Source: Oikopleura dioica
Taxonomy: Eukaryota > Animalia > Chordata
NCBI GenBank assembly: GCA_907165135.1
Contig: OU015567.1
Location: 6,882,001-6,946,000, forward strand
Reading direction: 5' to 3'
Length of the DNA: 64,000 nt
The notes beneath the pieces are model-generated. The model searched no databases, had not been told where the DNA came from, and worked only from the letters and a program-made list of their open reading frames with translations. Position numbers and translations under genes: made by a program. Shown piece by piece: positions 10,703 to 63,617 of the stretch (the stretch's first letter is position 1; each line of letters starts with the position of its first letter).

Positions 10703-13700
10703 GTGCCAGATCAGTCAGAGGAGAAGAAAAAGAGAAAATTCGCCGTGATGGAGATTGAGGATGAGCCAAGACCGAGTCCCAATATTAACGAAAAAAGAGT
10801 AGAAAAACTGGAGATTGAAAGAAAATTCCCTTACTTTGGCAGACTCTCGATCGACTATGAATCCGCCAGAGAACGATTTTCTATGCCGACGAAGGAAGAG
10901 ATCCGGGCTGCAAGAGGAAAAGATGGTGAGAGCAATGTCGCTCTTTATAAATACTGGCTGGACGACGATACGATGAACGCGATCGTCCAAAAAGAGGTCG
11001 AAGAGATGGACGAGAAAGACAAGGATCGATTCTATGTCTTTCCGATTTCTGTGTGGGTTTCTATCAAGTCGACTTCGGAAGCAGAGCATCCTAAGCACCC
11101 GGCGGACAGATATCAGCTCACCAAATCGGCGATTTGGCCGAATAGCAATTTTAAAAAGGTATTCTTGCAGGACCGCGATATGTTTTCAACTGTGTGCTAT
11201 TCAGCTTTTGGAGGGCCAGCGAAAATTCAATCCCTTCGAGCGAAAATACCTCCTCCTTCCTATAATCCACGATGCGCATTGGAACTTGGCAGTGATTGTG
11301 AATCCAATGGCAGCTATTCTCCGGCTGGCGCAGAAAGATCCACCCACAGAGAAGTTTATACGGGTAAGGCCTTTCAGAAACTTCTCTTGTGAAAGAAAGT
11401 TCTAGGGAAAAGAAGACCCATTTTTTGTTGAGAAAATATACGCTAAAATGTTCAATCTATCGGAAAATGAACGAATGGACGCGTCAAAGGTCACTCAAGA
11501 AGCTCCTTCGCTTGATGAGCCGGTGATCTACATTTTTTGTTCAAACAAGAAAAATACTTGGATTCGAAATTGTGAGCTCGCCTGTGAGTTTCTTACTGGA
11601 ATGTTTCTCGGTAAGCCTCACCATCACGGCAACTTTCTAATATTCTTCTGTAGATGAATCAAATCCGGCGTTGAAGAATCTTCAACAAGATTTTCTGAAA
11701 AAGCACCTTCTCGTGCGAAAAACTGTGAAGATGAAAGACACTGAAGGAAAAATTCTTGCTGTGAAGAAAATGCTCTCAATCGTGAATGGAAGAAAACCTA
11801 GAACACTCGTCTGTCCGCCTACAGAATCAGGAAAGCCGTGTCCATTGTGCTTCAATAACGGGAAAAACCATCACGAGAAATTCCTTCCCTTCCGTTATTA
11901 CAAGCCTTCTACTCCGACTCAGTCCAACGACTTCGATTGCGGCACTTACACTCTTTACGCTATTCGGATGTGGATGCAGCAAGAATCATTAGTGACATCT
12001 TCCTTGCATCAGGACTCGACTAGATTGTGGACTCCTGTAGATATCTACAAGTATCGCTACGAATGCAGACGGTACTTGGATAGAATCGCTGGCCGACCCG
12101 ATCGAGAGCCTGTAAATGAATTCGGTACAGCGGAGGAGAATTGCTATCTGCCCTGTCAGAAGAAGTCGTATGATCTGTTCAGGATGGTTGGCGATAATGT
12201 TGATCTGCTCAAGGCCCTTGAGAAGATTGGCAACAGTACAATTGATGATGGAAGCGAAGAAAAGGAAAGCAAGGATGAGAACGGATTGGAAAAGAAAGAG
12301 TCGAACGCGGAAGATACTGCTGTCGACGAAATTAAAGCGCTATCAGTGGGAGAAGTTGGTGAGAGCCTCGCAAACGAGGAAACAGAGAAAGTCAAGGAAA
12401 GAAAAGCTGAAAGTTTGGAGACTTGTTCAATTCAAGAAGCATCGGAGAAAGAGGACCTTCCTGCAGAGAATACTGTGGAAGAAAATAACAATCAAGATCG
12501 ACATGCAGCGGAAGCTGAAGACTCCACGAATGATGCTGCCAAATTTAAAACCATCAATTGTATTGACAGGGAAAAGGAACAGAATGAAATCATCAGTGGA
12601 TACAGAAACGTCCAGGAAGATAAATCTACCGACAGCATCTCGACAGAAGCTGATAATAGCGAAGAGATCGAATTTCACAATAAAATATCGGATAACGAGG
12701 ATGCCGACGATTCATTTCCTATTTACTCGCCTGAAGATATCTCCTCACGATTTGTTCAACTGATGATTGACGACGAGCCAGAAGACATTGAATCGGACTC
12801 CTCCATGATCGCAGAAGTCAAAGGCGTGTTCAATGAAGCTCTCATGGAAGAAAAGCAGTTAGCAAAAAGAGTTGATCCTGAACAAAAAAATTCTCCTGAA
12901 GGAAAACTTGTCAGGATCGAAGAATTTCTTAGTGAGCTGAATGAAGAGGCAGTAGTTGAGAATTCCGAGGTAGAACCAGTCAACTACAACGAAATGCCCA
13001 ATTTGGAAGCGCTTCAGAATTGTAATCAAGCTGTAATCGATGAGAAAATTGGCAGCCTTGACGAAAGTTGTGTGCAGGAAGAAGGGATAAGCATTGATGC
13101 CAGTGACTTCAGCGATAACAGTGCATCAGTTGACAGTAGAACTGTATTCAATCCTGCTACTATCGTTCGAAAAACATGGGCGTTGTAAGTTCACGTTTCC
13201 TTGCAAAGATTTTCATTCAAATTTAGTGATGTGGAAATCGACAGTAGCATTGATAGTAGCAAAGACAGTAGCATGGAAGAAAGTAACGCCAGTAGAGAGG
13301 ATTCCAAAACTGAAGATATCTCCAAGGAAGACGCCAAAAAGTCGCCAGAAGAAGAAGTCGAGAGTGAGAATGAGGTTAAAGAGGAGGAAAAAGAGAACGC
13401 TGAAAACATGGAGGAGTGCACTAATCAAGAGCCATCGACAACAAATGATTCTCCAGAGGACAATGTGAAAGAAAAGAAACCGCCGGCTAATGAAGACACT
13501 GACGATGCTATTTCCGCCAGCGAGCTCCAGAGCAGCGCGAAAAATACCTTGAATGAGACTATACAAGTCGTAGAAGTCATAATTCAAGATGCTACTGCGG
13601 CTTGCAAGAAAGACGAGCAAGTTATCATCATTGACGACAGTCTTGAAGAGGAGAGCACAGACAAACAAGAGCGAACAGAACTTGTTGAGAGCGTTCTATC

Positions 13701-55482: not shown

Positions 55483-56834
55483 CCGTCGGATTTTTTAGGG
55501 TTAGGGTTAAAGTTAGTCATTTTACCCTCTAAGAATTTTCCAAAAGAACTAGATTAAAATATAAAAATAAAAAATAATTCCGCCTTCTTCGCGAAATATG
55601 GGGAATTTTTGCCAATTAAAAACTTTATTTAAGAAAATTAAGCATATTCAATTTTTACTTACCATAAGCAAAAGAACAAAGCAGCGTTAGAAACTTCATC
55701 ATTCTCCACTGTCTCTTCTTTTCTCCCTCTTCTTTTGCTTATCTCTCGATTTTATTCAAGTCTTTCTGTTCCGAAAAATAGTCCCCGTAGACTGTGGCGT
55801 CGAAGGAGCCCAGGGAAGATAATTGGAGCTACTATCGGTGATATCTTTGCGAGAGGGCGCCGCAGAGCGCGCTCATGAATGCTCAGGCTGCTCTCTGTCG
55901 ACCTATCAATTTGGCGCCATCAGATAAGCTCCACGTTTCCTTTGACTGGTGAAAAAGTACGGAATATCGAAGCCAATTGGCCGTTGTGGCCCTACCCATG
56001 CGTAGAGGACGTGTTCTACTTCTAACGATTACGAGCATTTCGTAAGTAGAAACCAACAACATCTCCAAATTGGAGACTCCAATCTTTCAACCATTGTTTC
56101 GGCATGTCTACTTAATTGGATGAGACAATTATCCAACTTTATTGAATAATTAAACAAAACATTAGTATTTCTAATTAGTAGAGTTATTCTAAAGCAATTA
56201 TTTGAATAAACAAAATGATAAATTAAAATTGCTTAAGGACCCCCACTACGGTTTTTTTTCGATAATTTTCGTGGGAGAAGTCCTTAACTAGAAATCCTAC
56301 TAGAAATCCACTCCGCAGGCGCTAGAATTCTAGGTATTTTGACAAGCTGTCTTAGTTACCGGGGACTTAGGTTTTAAGGATATCATCATCTAGGTGCTCT
56401 AAAAACCCGCAATTTTTGATAATTTCAATCTTTGCTCCCAAAAACATAGGAACGTTTTGCATACTTCTATCGCCAGAAAAAAGCATGTGTAGAACATATA
56501 ATTTATGCTGCATGAAAATTGAAAATTGAACAAGTTCGAAAAAAAAAGAAAGAAATCTAACAAGTGTAAAAACCGTTTGTTTTTTATCTTCGCTAGATAA
56601 AATAAACCACCAGAAGCTTTATAAATAGAGCCCGACCTCATGAACAAGCAAAATCGGCTGCAGTAGATAAGTACTTACCACCGTTACGAATAAGTTTCAA
56701 AACTAGGTAATCAGAACGATTCTGATTACCTTTTTCATTTTGCGGGGGAATAAATGACAAGCGTCTCGTTAAAACTTTTTTTATGATTCGGGTTTGTACT
56801 CGGATTCAGAGAATTCCGTTGATTAATTTTAACC

Positions 56835-59800
56835 ATGGATGATACTTGTCTCGAGCAAAGTAAGAAAATTTTTACGATAACAGAGACTAATGAAGAAGAA
56901 TTGGGACTGCCGAGAAATCATAGCTCACATGATAATTTACACCACCACCATCATCACAATAGCAGAAGGGTTAGTCAAAAACTCATTTGGACATTTAAGG
57001 CTCTTCCGTTCTTCCCACGACAAAATTTGTTGTTTAAGGTTGTAGATATCAAGAATCGCCATTTGGTTGAAGCTATTTCTCCAAAATTTTACGTAGTGAC
57101 ACCCTTATTTTTCTCCGACAACTAATAGTTTAGACCTTTATCTTTTTCTGAGAAGTATTTTGAGCAGAAAAATAAGGGGGTTACTATGTTAAAAATTGGA
57201 AAATAAAAGACTGCAAGAAAATCCGATTCTTGATATCTACACCCTAAAGGAGGTCTGTTAATTCAATTTTCGAAGTGCCAGGGGGTCATCAATTCGATTT
57301 CCTTTTATTTCTAGCACACACAAGCAGCACCCCAGGTGCCGCATTTCCTTGGAACGCTGAAAGGCCGTGATCTAAAAACAGCAAAGCAGCTTTCTGCGCA
57401 CACTCGTCTTGTTGACAAAGGTGGACGAAACCAGGTTCATCTAAAAGATATGGATTGGGGCTCGGCAATTTCAATCAAACCCGCAATTTTCGAGCGCGTA
57501 AAAATACCGCGAGTTCGAAAAAACCATCAATCATAAGGTGAAAAGCGGAGCCCAGTGATAAGAGACCAGTCTCTTCATGAAGGATTATTTTACTTCAATG
57601 ATCGACACGCCTTGGTATTACGTGCTGGTCGGATTCTTCGTTTCGTTTATTGCAATGTGGGTCGCGTTCGGGCTAATTTACTGGCTCGTCGCTTATCAAC
57701 ACGGAGATATAGACCAGGGTGGGGAAAGGTCAACGGCACGGCACGGCACCGCGGCACGGACACGGCACGGCACGTGCCGTGCCGTGCCGCTCCTTTCAGG
57801 GAGTAAAGGTTTGGACACGGCACGGTGCCGCGGCACGAGAAAATGAAGCACCAGCAAATTCTCCTTGAATGATTCGTTTTTGGGCCGGATGATAGGAATT
57901 TTCGATAAGCGCTCTCATTTGGGCGCTGCATTTTGCCATGAACTGATTCATGAATCATCAAAGGGGTGAAAAGGGAAAATGTGAGGGGAGCCCAACAACA
58001 AACTGCTTTATTTTCCTCAGACTTGCTTTCTCAAAAAGAGAAAATGTCTCAAAAATCAATTTCTGATATTTTTCCTCCGCGGAAACGTCCGCGACCAGAG
58101 GACGACGAAGAAGTTTCTGAGGTCGATAATCCCGGACCGCAAAAGGAATGGCGACCGATCAGAGATCAGGCTGAGTCGCTAAGAGAGGAATTTCAGAGAG
58201 ATCCTGCTTTTCTCGGGATGGCTGGTTTCGAGGGAGAATACGTAATTGCCAGCTCGCAATTCACTGGAAATATTCGCTGTACTGCAGAGAACTGTCCGAA
58301 TCGATCTTCTTTCCGTGGCATCGCAAAAGGGAAGCCCAAAAAAGACCGAAGTAAGTTTAAGAAATTTGGGCAGTCTTTTATATAAAATTTCCTGCCCCTT
58401 ATTTTATTCGGGCAGTCTTTATTATAAAATTTCATGCCCTTTAATTTATTCGGGCAGTCCTCACTATAAAATTTCCTGTCCTTTTATACATGTGGGCAGT
58501 ATTATCTATAAAAATTCATGCCCTTTACTAATCATTTTTATAAGTGAGAGATCATCTCAAAGCGCATCATCTGAGATCAACTCGTCCTCAAACTCAGCCG
58601 AGCATCAACCCAATCGTCAACTTGCGCAACAAGAACCCTTTCAAACCGACAGCAAAGCAAAAAGAAGCAGTTGCAGACTGTGAAGCGAAGGCACTTGCGT
58701 CTCTCCATCTTCCACAAGGATTTTTCGGAAGGTATAAATAAATCATTGACTGACAAAAAATTAAACAAAATACAGCCAGCATATCCGTGAGCGCGATCGT
58801 CTTCTCCTGACAATTAGCAACTGCGATCCCAATCAACTCGAGCTTCTTGGCGGAAAAAACAAGAAATCAATGAAGACAAACCTAAACAACAGCTCGCTCA
58901 AAGTGAAAAATGCGATCATTGAAGTCTTGAAGAGGCCTGATTTCTGTTGTTTCAGATGCAAAGCTAGCTGCAGTGGCTCGTGAAACGTGCAAAAAGGAAT
59001 GATGGTAAAGGCAGTGGAGCTCTTCGATTTGCCTAGCAGCTACGGAGACTCCATCAACACTTTCATCGAAAATATGAGGAAGCCAAAAGAAAGACCAGAT
59101 CAAGACAAGCCGAAGAAATGGAATCATTTTCTTGAAGAGAGAGGCGACAATCCTGAAGAAAAAGACAAGATTCAGATCTATAGATTAAAGCATCCAAGCT
59201 CCACTGAGACTGATGAATCGATCAAGAAAAAACTGGAAACAGAAAAAGTCAGCTACACGAAAATAAAATCCCAATACAGAGGCATCCGGTTCAGCAACAA
59301 TTATGACAAATTTGGGACTGTTCTCCAGTACGAACACTTGATTCGCTCGATTCAACACGGAAGCCTGAAAGAGTTCTCTTATCTACTGGAGAATGTTGAT
59401 GTTCCAAACTTCGCATTTCTGAACGCAATCATGTTCATTTACCGACATCTTCATCCACTATTGCGTGCATCAGAAGAAAAAATCAGCTCGGTAAGTCCAA
59501 AAATAAGGGGCAGGAATCTTTATAAAAATCCTGCCCTAATCAATACAAATTAATTATGGGCAGGAATCTTTATAAAAAATCCTGCCCTAATCAATACAAA
59601 TTAATTATGGGCAGGAATCTTTATAAAAAATCGTGCCCTAATCAATACAAATTAATTATGGGCAGGAATCTTTATAAAAAATCCTGCCCTAATTGAACTT
59701 TTGTTATAACGTAAATTAAGGCTGCCGAGACTGTCCAGATACTCGCATCCGTTTGTTCCTTTGCTGCTTCTGTTGAGAAAGAATTGACGATCAAGTTCGG

Positions 59801-62800
59801 CAAGGACTCCTCCGTGACTTCCATTGGGGCGAAGCTGGCGAAAGGGCTCTATTACAAGGCGTCTCAAATGCTGTTTGAAGGATGCTGGCTAGAAAAACGC
59901 ATAAAGAAAAACGGAATTGATGATGGACCCGGAATCTGGAAAGGTCAAGAGCCGAAACGGGTTTGGCCTATTCACCACGCGCTACTTGTGCTCAACTTCT
60001 TCAAAAGAAATTGTAAAATCGTCAAGCTGGAAGATGCACTCAGCGAGGCTGCCAAGACCGACGAGTTCTATCGGGAAAATTTAAATTACGTACAGCAGCA
60101 AACGAAAAAATGGGCTCAATCCGGAATGGAGTATCTATCGGCACTTTCGAAAGTTCTGAACGAAAGCAGTATCGCAGAACCAGAGCTTGAAGAAGAAATA
60201 AACTTGGAAGAGCTCAATATCGCTGGCAATCGAATTGACCCGGAGTTGCTTCAAGAGAGCGAAGTTCGCGAGCCGCCTCCACCGAAAAATGATTTCGAGC
60301 TCGAAGTTGAAGCCTACAAAAAGTTGAACCTCCTTCAACTTGTCGCCTGGCAGAAGAAAATTGAGAAGAAAAACCCTCGAACAAACTGCGAGAGTTTCTT
60401 TCTCCGCGAATTCTGGACTTCCGAATTCACAAAAATCTACCTCTTCTCAAAAAATGCGCGTCGACTGTGAGTTTTTATCTTTTTCGAAAATAATTTGAAA
60501 AATTAAAGCTCCTTAATTGCCCATCGAGCTCTTCTTCCATCGAACGAGTCTTTGCAGAGGCAACTGCCGACTTGGGAAAGAATAAACCACGACTCAAGGC
60601 CCAAACAATTGAGCTCTACCGACAGCGAACCACGGCCGACCAGTTCCTCCAGCTCCTCCGAACAGTCTGCTTCAAGAACGATATCCCTTACACTTTTTAG
60701 CACTGTTCCTTGACATATTCTCTCTAAATAAACGGAAATAATTGGAAAAAAACGCGTTTTTTCGTGGTTTAAAAATCAGGGCAGTATATTTTACAGCAAT
60801 TCCTGCCCATAAAAGGGCACAATTTAGGGGCAGTCAATTTTACAGCAATTCCTGCCCTTAAAAGGGCACAATTTAGGGGCAGTCAATTTTACAGCGATTC
60901 CTGCCCTATTTTTCAAAATAAGAAATTTTTCTAGAACATCTATTGACATTCTGAGGTAGAAATCAAAAAACATTAGTTTAAAAGTGAAAAATGCCGAGAA
61001 AAGACCGCGATCAGATTGATGTTATCTGCCTGGAATGTCATAGCCTGTACCTTGATGGTTGGCGTTACCATATTGAGAGTATCAAGGTATTAATTAACGT
61101 TTATGATTTATAAATATTGTTAAAAGGATCATTTTCTGAAAAAACATTACACGATGATGATGACGAACAATCCTAAGCGTCAGTGGGAAATTATTCATAA
61201 TAATATTGAGATTATTCCAAAAGGCTCTCAATACGACTCGCTTTTCCATGTTTCGGACTACATCATCGGTATTTTTCTCACTTCAATTTATGAAAAAATC
61301 ATTTCAAGATACTTTTCATCAAGTTATCTGGGGCCCAAGACTGCGCATTTCCATACGATTCCGATACAGAGGCAAGCACAGTGCTCACCCTGAGCCCAAC
61401 TATACAATTCTTCCGATTTCGGAACTAAAATGGTCTCAAAAGCTCAAAATGTTCATTGACGCAGCCATTTCGAAGACAAAAGATGACAGGTTATCGATTC
61501 CTCAATTAGTATTTCAATAACAAAAGTCTAGAAAGAAGAGAAAATTAATAAAAACTATGCGCGATCGAAACCGTCATGGATATGACGCCGAAGAGCATCG
61601 AAATCAACGACTTTACTCTGGGTGTGGAGCATGTAATGCTCGTGAGAATCAAGAAGAACCGGCTCAACCTGAAGTCGAGTATTTTTAATAATATCTTTTA
61701 TTAAATAAAATTATATTCAAATAGTTTTGAGTGTTTTTTTACGAGAAAAAAAGGAAAAAACTGTGCCGTGCCGTGCTGTGCCGTGTCCCGGCACGCGTTC
61801 TTAAATTTTTTGCCGTGCCGTGCCGTGCCGTGCCGCGGCACAGGAATTTTTGGCGTGCCGTGCCGTGCCGGTGCCGTTGAATTTTCTTGAGACATTCCCC
61901 ACCCTGATATAGACTATTACAGCAATCCGGCGAACATGAGTGATCATACGTAAGTTTACAAAGCGCCATTTATGCATCGAGGAATGTGGTTTTGTTCATT
62001 GTTGAAATATTATTAGCGTTTGTGTGGACAATGTTTTCGACTTCACGACTGCCTTTTTATTCTCTTTGGAAGGTCAAACCACCATCGGCTACGGATCACG
62101 TGGCCCTACCGTAAGTTAGAAAAATGAGAAATTGTTTATCAGTAATTCAGATAGAGTTGCCTGAAAAACACTTTTTATTTTAGTCTTGTTTCTGTCAAAA
62201 TGCTTTTTACAGCAATTTCAGTGCTTTAAAATCTGATTGGCTTTAGTGCTCACATTTTCGAATCTGATTGGCCAAGAAAGAAACGTTTCTAGAACAAATT
62301 GTTTTTAAAAATTTTCAAAAAAAAAATATTTTTTTTTCCAACTACAACTAAAAAGAAAATTTGAAAAAATAATGATTTTTATCGTAAACAATTTGTTCTA
62401 GAAACATTTATTATAGATATAAGCCAATCAGATTTGAAAATCGGAAAACATAAGCCAATAAGATTTCAGAATTTAAGAAGAAACTTATCGAAAAATAAAG
62501 ATTGATCATGTCGTTGGTATTTTTTTTGTAAATAAAATTTTTAGATTCAATGCTGGTTTGTTGTTGTCGTCCAATTTATCCAGTGGCTCCTCGCTTACGC
62601 CTTCGATTCCCTCGTCGTTACAATCATTTTCACGAAACTAGCTCGCCCAAAATATCGAGCAAAGAGCATCGAGTTCTCAAAAAGCGCGGTCATCAACGAG
62701 CGCGACGGAAAGCTGGTGCTGATCGTCAGAGTCGCCAACCTCCGCGACTCGCTGATGCTGGACGTAACCGTCTCTGGCAAGTTATTGAAAACGCGGCGAA

Positions 62801-63513
62801 CTCCGGACGGCGAATGGCTCGCACTTGAAGAGCGCAACGTCGAATTCGACAATTCTAAGGCCCTTTTCCTCACTCAACCGGTCGGTAAGTGCATTCTTCT
62901 GCATCAAGAGAACTGAAATCATTAAAATTGCAAGACTATATCCACACTATTGACGAGAGATCACCGCTTTACGAGTTGTCGCAGAGTATCCTCGACCGCG
63001 ATGAAGAACCACTTGAACTTGTTGTGATTATGTCCGGTAAAATTTTACTGTCACTGACTTTTACTTACTGTGTTACAGGCATTGTGGAAGGGACTGGAAT
63101 GGCATGCCAAGTGAGAACGTCTTATATTCCCAATGAAATCTTTTGGGGACATAGATTCAGGCCAACGAATTGGGGCTCGAACGCGAAAAGGAAAAGCTTT
63201 ATTTTTCATAAATAAACGATTCAGAACAGGATTGAGCCCCAAAAAGATTACCAAAATAAGACGCTCAATCGATTCCAAGTCGACTACAAAATGTTCCATG
63301 AGCACTATCTGGTAATTAAACATCTCACTAGTCCTTTTGTTACAAAAATATTGGAAGATTGAGCCACTAATGTCTGGAAGAAGCGCAGAAGATCGCGACT
63401 TCGACCGAGAGTCGGAAAGATCGTCAACGACGCAAGAGTATGATACTATCACTCATGAAGTGGCCGTTCGAGCGAATATTCTGGCCAATATGATGACGAA
63501 TACATCCATTTGA
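56835..63513 (+). CDS. Inward-rectifier K+ channel (Kir) interrupted by a 4.2-kb hAT element
   Basis: RLVDKGG, MKDYFTSMIDTPWYYVL...AYQHGDID, CVDNVFDFTTAFLFSLEGQTTIGYGSR, KLARPKYRA...FSKSAVI...RVANLR, EGTGMACQVRTSYIPNEIFWGHRF. Confidence 0.92.
58367..58523. repeat. Tandem array of ~4 GGGCAG...(C/A)TGCCC hairpin units in transposase intron 1
   Basis: ~42-bp period within intron 58351-58544. Confidence 0.85.
59508..59689. repeat. Tandem array of 4 GGGCAG...CTGCCC hairpin units in a transposase intron
   Basis: ~50-bp period gggcaggaatctttataaaaatcctgccctaatcaatacaaattaattat within intron 59491-59720. Confidence 0.9.
60779..60907. repeat. Tandem array of 3 GGGCAG...CTGCCC hairpin units between transposase and cargo gene
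   Basis: ~50-bp period gggcagtcaattttacagcaattcctgccc. Confidence 0.85.
60991..61688 (+). CDS. hAT cargo gene, ~190 aa: CxxC..H..H finger, chromo-like segment, HH..CxxC tail
   Basis: Exons 60991-61086, 61127-61268, 61309-61489, 61532-61688; three 40-42-nt GT-AG introns, all frame-preserving, no internal stop. Confidence 0.75.
62230..62465. repeat. Inverted-repeat element in a Kir intron
   Basis: 2x aatctgattggc vs 2x gccaat(c/a)agatt, with an inner gtttctagaacaaattgttt / aaacaatttgttctagaaac pair. Confidence 0.7.
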
Positions 63514-63617
63514 AAGTTCAATTCTGTACTCTGATTTTCAATAATGTAAAACAAACAATCTCTAGAACGGAAAATATATGCGCATATTTTAATTTTGAGA
63601 TGAAAAGGACTAGAACA

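Follow-up and report, generated by a model that had tools for sequence, protein, structure and literature searches.

In maize, exonic insertions of the transposons Ds and dSpm are spliced imprecisely through cryptic sites at their ends, sometimes restoring the reading frame. To our knowledge, no other animal shows a turnover of intron positions as extreme as that of Oikopleura. Introners whose GT or GC comes from the element and whose AG comes from the target-site duplication (TSD) belong to the textbook examples (PMC11282704), the gain or loss of codons through introner insertion has been described (PMC9860276), and autonomous long terminal repeat and terminal inverted repeat (TIR) elements yield functional introns, most introners being non-autonomous (PMC12130899). 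SOS splicing, which is spliceosome-independent, removes full-length Tc1, Tc3 and Tc4 from the mRNAs of Caenorhabditis elegans and also, in human cells, a mariner reporter; it requires only inverted repeats, cuts at several mostly non-GU-AG sites nearby, and is reported to be conserved from nematode to human (PMC12779559). In Fritillaria borealis, as the work of Henriet (2019) is relayed in PMC11282704 and PMC13326754, non-canonical introns derived from MITEs (miniature inverted-repeat transposable elements) are excised by the U2 spliceosome. Here, we describe a 4,192-bp hAT-like transposon inserted in a coding exon of a Kir channel gene in a 64,000-nucleotide stretch (hereafter the window) of chromosome 2 of Oikopleura dioica, assembly OKI2018_I69.

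The window was identical to OU015567.1 across the 12,065 bases compared, and its positions are converted to OU015567.1 positions by adding 6,882,000. A nematode source, suggested by the short introns and TTTCAG acceptors, was rejected on protein matches to Oikopleura dioica and on this identity. The assembly was obtained from a single male at generation 47 of laboratory culture, with a heterozygosity of about 3.6%; O. dioica introns have a median length of 49 bp, and 11% of them are non-canonical (PMC8008620).

Insertion of the element in a Kir channel exon

The locus probably holds a recent, polymorphic insertion of an Ac-like transposon of the hAT superfamily in the coding exon for the M1 helix and turret of the Kir channel, as an ordinary allele that truncates the channel. 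The element spans 57715-61906 (6,939,715-6,943,906 on OU015567.1), with 4,168 bp between its two 12-bp TIRs. The left TIR, CAGGGTGGGGAA, was located at 57715-57726 on the forward strand and the right TIR at 61895-61906 on the reverse strand (TTCCCCACCCTG on the forward strand); the repeat is exact at both ends, and the exact-match search gave 2 matches in 64 kb against 0.07 expected by chance. An exact 8-bp TSD, ATATAGAC, abuts both element ends and was read directly at 57707-57714 (Kir codons ..D-I-D) and 61907-61914, with the run TTCCCCACCCT just before the right copy. Subterminal arrays of GGCAC(G) units at the left end (57733-57840) are complementary to arrays of (C)GTGCC units at the right end (61764-61881), both given on the forward strand.

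The TIR consensus of hAT elements begins YARNG and their TSD consensus is nTnnnnAn. The short, 12-bp TIR starting with CAGGG, the 8-bp TSD matching nTnnnnAn and the subterminal short repeats fit this superfamily well. With the Kir domain matches given below, they uphold the first-pass annotation of the window, which had reported a hAT-type element with its TSD in a Kir exon. Neither the whole element nor any of its parts was found a second time in the 64-kb window, and no further copies were found in the sequence collections searched. Five matches to the TIR plus subterminal motif were rejected as chance matches, lying on bacterial contigs of 61-67% G+C that were otherwise unlike the element.

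An empty site was found on a Tara Oceans metagenome contig (L004, from ERR1726614), where the site …HGDIDYYSNPANMSDHT reads GGAGATATAGACTATTAC and ATATAGAC is single copy. This contig showed 93.5% nucleotide identity to the element-free window, whereas Bergen (L003) and a third lineage (L001) were 67-70% identical to the window across the same stretch, so that L004 belongs to the Okinawa lineage or to a very close relative. A 58-aa protein encoded on L004 (P0170, MKDYF...AYQHGDIDYYSNPANMSDHT), found by querying with the open reading frame (ORF) that runs from Kir into the element, matched exactly the empty site D-I-D-Y-Y that had been predicted from the window. Bergen P0152 (HNDIEFYKNPANMSDH) and P0171 (HNDIEFYNNPVNMSDH) were likewise uninterrupted at the insertion point. 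Presence in the window and absence in L004 showed one transposition event. As a same-lineage contig and two further lineages all have the empty site, this is a derived insertion that is polymorphic, and these comparisons indicate that it is recent. Between the window and L004, the exons at 57315-57458 and 57565-57714 plus 61915-61949 differed by 8 synonymous and 2 non-synonymous codons, the pattern that would be expected of a gene under constraint until the insertion.

A Nanopore-based consensus from one heterozygous animal might also produce an apparent insertion by faulty assembly. The 8-bp sequence that is single copy in L004 is, however, duplicated exactly and adjoins exact TIRs, a pattern that marks transposition rather than a chimeric join, and an assembly artefact was therefore given next to no credence.

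The whole Kir gene was reconstructed on the forward strand at 56835-63513, from the start ATG at 56835 to the annotated 3' end at 63513, and is otherwise open. Pfam analysis showed the IRK domain (PF01007) at 57577-57714 (E=3e-12) and on the TIGYG exon (E=1e-7), and the IRK_C domain (PF17655) at 62545-62880 (E=6e-17). The IRK domain with its T-I-G-Y-G filter and the IRK_C domain identify the gene as a Kir channel, and alignment with Kir proteins agrees. By Pfam and alignment, the exon part before the insertion (57565-57714, forward strand) encodes the M1 helix (…TSLFMKDYF…AYQHGDID), and the part after it (YYSNPANMSDHT) lies at 61915-61949 on the same strand. The insertion directly follows ...AYQHGDID, where M1 ends and the extracellular loop that precedes the pore helix begins. 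The first-pass annotation had called this M1-pore loop length-variable; this held across the Kir family, with about 9 to more than 40 residues in a 35-sequence alignment, and did not hold among larvacean orthologues, in which the loop is fixed at 15 residues. With the element conceptually removed, the hand-built Kir model had at least 394 aa and was open throughout, in agreement with the earlier statement that the downstream exons are intact. A HMMER search with the largest Kir exon gave only two close relatives, and the protein P0151 (Oidioi.mRNA.OKI2018_I69.chr2.g5878; locus GCA_907165135.1 OU015567.1) matched the Kir exons of the window exactly.

Other introns of the Kir gene also varied. 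A 50-nt GT-AG intron at 62885-62934 of the Okinawa genome, between LTQPV and DY, is missing from Bergen L003 and from contig L001, in which the codons run on without a break, which points to a lineage-specific gain or loss. Nested inverted repeats were observed within two Kir introns, at 57034-57248 (arms of 25 nt at 92% and 38 nt at 82%) and at 62225-62466 (44 nt at 82% and 27 nt at 93%), and resemble foldback or MITE-type insertions. The intron holding the second set is 434 nt in the window against about 50 nt in Bergen.

Possible removal of the element from the transcript

Reading of the Kir exon into the element gave a first in-frame stop at 57844-57846 (forward strand). The ORF from the ATG at 57577 (57577-57846, 89 aa) contained 46 Kir codons and 43 element codons before the stop, and an unspliced transcript would yield an M1-only peptide. 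Under the reading as a truncating allele, the element would have inserted in the Kir exon, the channel frame would run into it and stop after the 43 foreign codons, and the allele would be a null or strong hypomorph of this Kir copy. The allele would lie on one haplotype of the sequenced male or would have drifted up in the generation-47 culture, and a disabled Kir copy may be tolerated as heterozygous, may have drifted in culture, or may be redundant.

The first-pass annotation had proposed instead that the spliceosome removes the whole element, from CAGG/GT (57719) to TAG/AC (61912), leaving a turret with an added Gln-Asp, a working channel and a nascent, transposase-bearing intron. Its arithmetic was reproduced. 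Direct reading confirmed the GT at 57719-57720 within the left TIR, the AG at 61911-61912 within the right TSD and the pyrimidine run preceding it, and the join 57718^61913 reads GAT ATA GAC CAG GAC TAT TAC (DIDQDYY), in frame and 6 nt longer than the empty-site exon. This proposal gains from the symmetry of the TIR, by which the 5' end offers CAGG/GT and the 3' end a C/T-rich tract in either orientation, from an insertion point in a loop of widely varying length across Kir channels, and from documented introners with element and TSD splice sites, added codons or autonomy (PMC11282704, PMC9860276, PMC12130899). The loop is, as stated, fixed in length among the orthologues.

The same arithmetic proved easy to obtain. 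Within about 50-80 nt of the element ends, 8 GT and 5 AG sites formed 40 pairs, and 10 of these were in frame and stop-free. Equally small in-frame changes were left by the pairs 57729/61922 (+6, DIDQGGESNP...) and 57719/61891 (+27). The second of these uses an element-internal AG (61890-61891, forward strand) and leaves 19 nt of the element plus the 8-nt TSD; since it lies wholly inside the element, it would be in frame at any insertion site. When in-silico insertions of the element were made at each of the 413 positions usable in two Kir exons, a pair of TIR donor and TSD acceptor was in frame and stop-free at 34 positions (8%), and an in-frame pair of some kind, no more than 20 nt from the ends, was available at 401 positions (97%) in sense orientation and at about 36% in antisense. 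Moreover, the preference of hAT elements for A at TSD position 7 would place an AG at positions 7-8 more often, with a scar of +4 nt that is out of frame.

Splice sites were scored with a crude matrix built from 12 local GT-AG introns. The proposed donor scored -1.1 bits (training sites, 4.3-11.0) and ranked 76th of the 158 GT sites in the would-be pre-mRNA segment, while the proposed acceptor scored 0.6 bits (training sites, 6.1-12.2) and ranked 99th of 266 AG sites, both being close to the median. The would-be intron, at 4,194 nt, is about 85 times the species median of 49 bp (PMC8008620), and its first 130 nt are G+C-rich and strongly structured. On the same strand, the segment holds the genes of the element, far stronger splice sites belonging to their introns, and seven AATAAA motifs; the caution already attached to the proposal, that the GTGGGG donor is weak and that internal splice sites compete, was well placed. 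A scan of Joint Genome Institute (JGI) metagenome and metatranscriptome contigs for an empty-site or small-scar junction gave 0 matches, and neither an annotated junction nor a family of copies in the window or the searched collections was found to accompany the proposed intron.

The splice sites of element and TSD would restore the frame, as in introners, although an arbitrary exon position has an 8% chance of this configuration and both sites score weakly. The setup singled out as "Introner-like" is hence not special, and the notion of the element acting as a frame-neutral intron drew no support from one pair among 10 suitable ones in 40, with sites scoring about as random ones do. The in-frame GT-AG pair does not exceed chance expectation, and we infer that it arises incidentally from the sequence and is not an evolved intron. 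Spliceosomal removal of the whole element with a working channel was judged very unlikely, and the earlier interpretation holds for the anatomy but lacks support as to function.

The public annotation was considered as a witness to splicing. It was made with AUGUSTUS and RNA-seq intron hints from the same culture as the sequenced male (PMC8008620). It divides the locus into three separate genes, and its Kir model begins at the first ATG after the element (61936, MSDHT...). No junction across the element is present in it, and the upstream Kir exons belong to no gene. Both public Kir annotations appear wrong, that of Okinawa (61936-63513, P0151) and that of Bergen (L003, 1317-2766). The Okinawa model is truncated at its 5' end and skips the conserved segment VRTSYIPNEIFWGHRF, while the Bergen annotation splits the Kir gene at an upstream intron without GT into a 106-aa N-terminal "gene" and a model starting from MVDTPW. 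Because the Bergen model is also split and the Okinawa model skips VRTSYIPNEIFWGHRF, the annotation is a weak witness against abundant splicing. The Kir channel is probably poorly covered by RNA-seq.

Excision of the element from the mRNA through pairing of its ends, as in SOS splicing, would leave mixed junctions in or near the TIRs, only some of them in frame, and would give partial rescue. SOS splicing involves the host factors AKAP17A, CAAP1 and RTCB and produces mostly non-GU-AG junctions; its substrate feature, an exonic DNA transposon with pairable inverted ends, was found here in silico. The element ends co-folded at -190 kcal/mol with 92 intermolecular pairs, compared with -115 +/- 6 kcal/mol for ends shuffled at the mononucleotide level only. 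SOS splicing acts on exonic DNA transposons, full-length ones included, and inverted repeats suffice for it (PMC12779559); terminal stems likewise close two non-GT introns of this Kir gene, as described below. Set against this, the perfect TIR is 12 nt compared with 54 nt in Tc1, the remaining pairing comes from short repeat arrays, the control was restricted to the mononucleotide shuffle, and the annotated Kir model is truncated. On this modelled evidence, removal by end pairing would be an unlikely course.

The two introns in question, at about 57459-57564 and 63174-63224 with boundaries set from reading frames alone, have no GT at any frame-compatible donor. Both start within the 10-mer TTGGGGCTCG, of which only two exact copies occur in the 64-kb window, and GAGCCC(C), which is able to pair with TTGGGGCTCG, is found near the 3' end of each. 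The regions compared were 57455-57564 and 63170-63242 of the window, 229-364 of L004, 1642-1788 of L003 and 136-294 of L001. The terminal stem of the first intron was present in the minimum-energy folds of all four lineages and in the RNAalifold consensus, and it is kept although Okinawa and Bergen are 67-70% identical at the locus and the intron interior aligns with large gaps. No covariation was seen in this stem, 7 of 7 pairs being invariant, which neither proves nor disproves the structure. Stem-closed introns of this kind would modestly raise the prior for a role of pairing ends in the RNA processing of O. dioica. A wider conjecture would be that exonic sequences with pairing inverted ends are removed from O. 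dioica pre-mRNA via that pairing, by a permissive U2 spliceosome or an SOS-like process, with the hAT copy as a polymorphic first step of intron birth and the two TTGGGGCTCG introns as older products. As a conjecture from sequence, we regard it as quite improbable.

Several observations weigh against the reading of the locus as a plain truncating allele. The rest of the Kir gene is intact, with no decay since the insertion, which fits recency and would also fit rescue. Several in-frame removals are possible at the element ends, these ends can pair extensively, and larvacean spliceosomes tolerate unusual splice sites (PMC8008620, PMC13326754). To these is added the weakness of the annotation as a witness, given its break at a non-canonical intron in Bergen and its skipped segment in Okinawa.

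Genes and repeats inside the element

Two annotated genes lie within the element, both on the strand of the Kir gene (forward). The first, at 58044-60713, is a multi-exon gene for a 690-aa protein, the presumed transposase, and its span and length were reproduced. The second, at 60991-61688, has 4 exons and encodes 191 aa; its model was reproduced uniquely, with three GT-AG introns of 40, 40 and 42 nt. The length of 690 aa was reproduced by two alternative intron sets under constrained enumeration, and an in-frame TGA at 58981-58983 is bypassed at the annotated length only through a weak intron. No Pfam match is recorded for either product in the public annotation.

The sole signal of a transposase family was a match to PF05699 on 60509-60697 (E=0.2; 11.9 bits against a cut-off of 21.4), below threshold, in a forward-strand frame (60509-60700) with a motif resembling the hAT C-terminal dimerisation region (LLNCPSSSSSIERVFAEA...). 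The only available GT-AG intron (60467-60508, 42 nt) does not lead into this frame, so that a different frame closes the annotated product; the motif would be brought back into frame by a 41-nt TG..AG intron or by the loss of one base. The large gene also has a Cys..Cys/His..His stretch near its N-terminus and a ...PSSS..ERVF... motif at its C-terminus. Pfam scans of its remaining exons and of two reading frames of the 191-aa gene gave no match, and no catalytic motifs were recognisable in the large gene. A word-indexed homology search returned no relatives of 125-399 aa for the 228-aa exon, sequence searches of the PDB gave nothing meaningful for the element exons, and a single-sequence AlphaFold model of the 249-aa exon had a predicted local distance difference test (pLDDT) score of 43 and was unusable. 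The description "transposase-bearing" thus leans on a sub-threshold domain match, and the element may have a defective transposase; both that description and "near-full-length" are plausible for it.

Three tandem arrays with periods of 42, 51 and 49 nt were observed at 58356-58523, 59502-59693 and 60779-60925, in two introns and the 3' region of the large gene. Their units are hairpins of about 30 nt, GGGCAG-N18-20-CTGCCC, which within the window are confined to these arrays and match no Rfam family; an Rfam search of 56500-63600 also gave no match. Elsewhere in the window, a 505-aa open frame at 11671-13185 showed a marginal match to the Ulp1-protease domain (Peptidase_C48, E=3e-4). Some DNA transposons often carry this domain, and the frame may thus represent another mobile element.

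Comparison with known systems

The element resembles the hAT transposons Ac, hobo and Hermes in its 8-bp TSD fitting nTnnnnAn, its subterminal arrays of short motifs and its multi-exon gene. The TIR of maize Ac begins CAGGGATGAAA, to which the CAGGG start of the element is similar. The Cys..Cys/His..His stretch and the ...PSSS..ERVF... motif are further likenesses. Unlike these transposons, the element has no significant transposase-domain match, its dimerisation frame is missed by the canonical intron and no catalytic motifs are recognisable, and it carries the second, 191-aa gene and the GGGCAG...CTGCCC hairpin arrays.

Introners of Micromonas, Aureococcus and others (Huff 2016; Gozashti 2022, 2025) are likewise elements with TIRs and TSDs in coding exons. 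The GT from the element and the AG from the TSD, found here in silico, also correspond, and both added codons and autonomous copies are known among introners. In contrast, introners form many-copy families that are demonstrably spliced and measure tens to hundreds of bases, whereas the present element is 4.2 kb long and is one copy known from DNA alone, with weak sites. Its scar could never be zero because the donor sits 4 nt inside the TIR.

The removal of Tc1, Tc3 and Tc4 in C. elegans (Rushforth and Anderson 1996; Zhao et al. 2025, PMC12779559) is comparable in that a full-length transposon with pairing ends lies in an exon of an animal gene, and rescue would hinge in both cases on in-frame junctions and a tolerant protein region. 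The superfamily and the host differ, the perfect TIR of the element is short, and the present case is known from its sequence. The introns of F. borealis, so far as they are described in the later accounts, come from the same animal class, carry TIRs and TSDs at species-specific positions and are served by a permissive U2 spliceosome, and the Kir gene here has its two non-GT introns with pairing ends. According to the same accounts, those introns are short, non-autonomous, very numerous and of AG-AC or AG-AT type, and more than 90% of introns are non-canonical there, in contrast to about 11% in O. dioica. With maize Ds and dSpm, the locus shares a hAT-family element in an exon; the maize cases differ in their plant hosts, their mostly non-autonomous elements and their proof at the RNA level.

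With a full-length DNA transposon that is dated, polymorphic and lodged in a conserved coding exon, the locus provides a natural experiment on the origin of introns in Oikopleura. The empty-site allele is known, and the culture RNA-seq and the DNA reads of the individual are public, which makes the splicing question cheap to settle. If the allele is only a null, the locus would represent an ordinary transposon insertion together with a caution about the truncated annotation of the channel. If the exonic element acts as an intron, it would be a new instance in a notable host and not a new kind of phenomenon, since its parallels among introners are already described.

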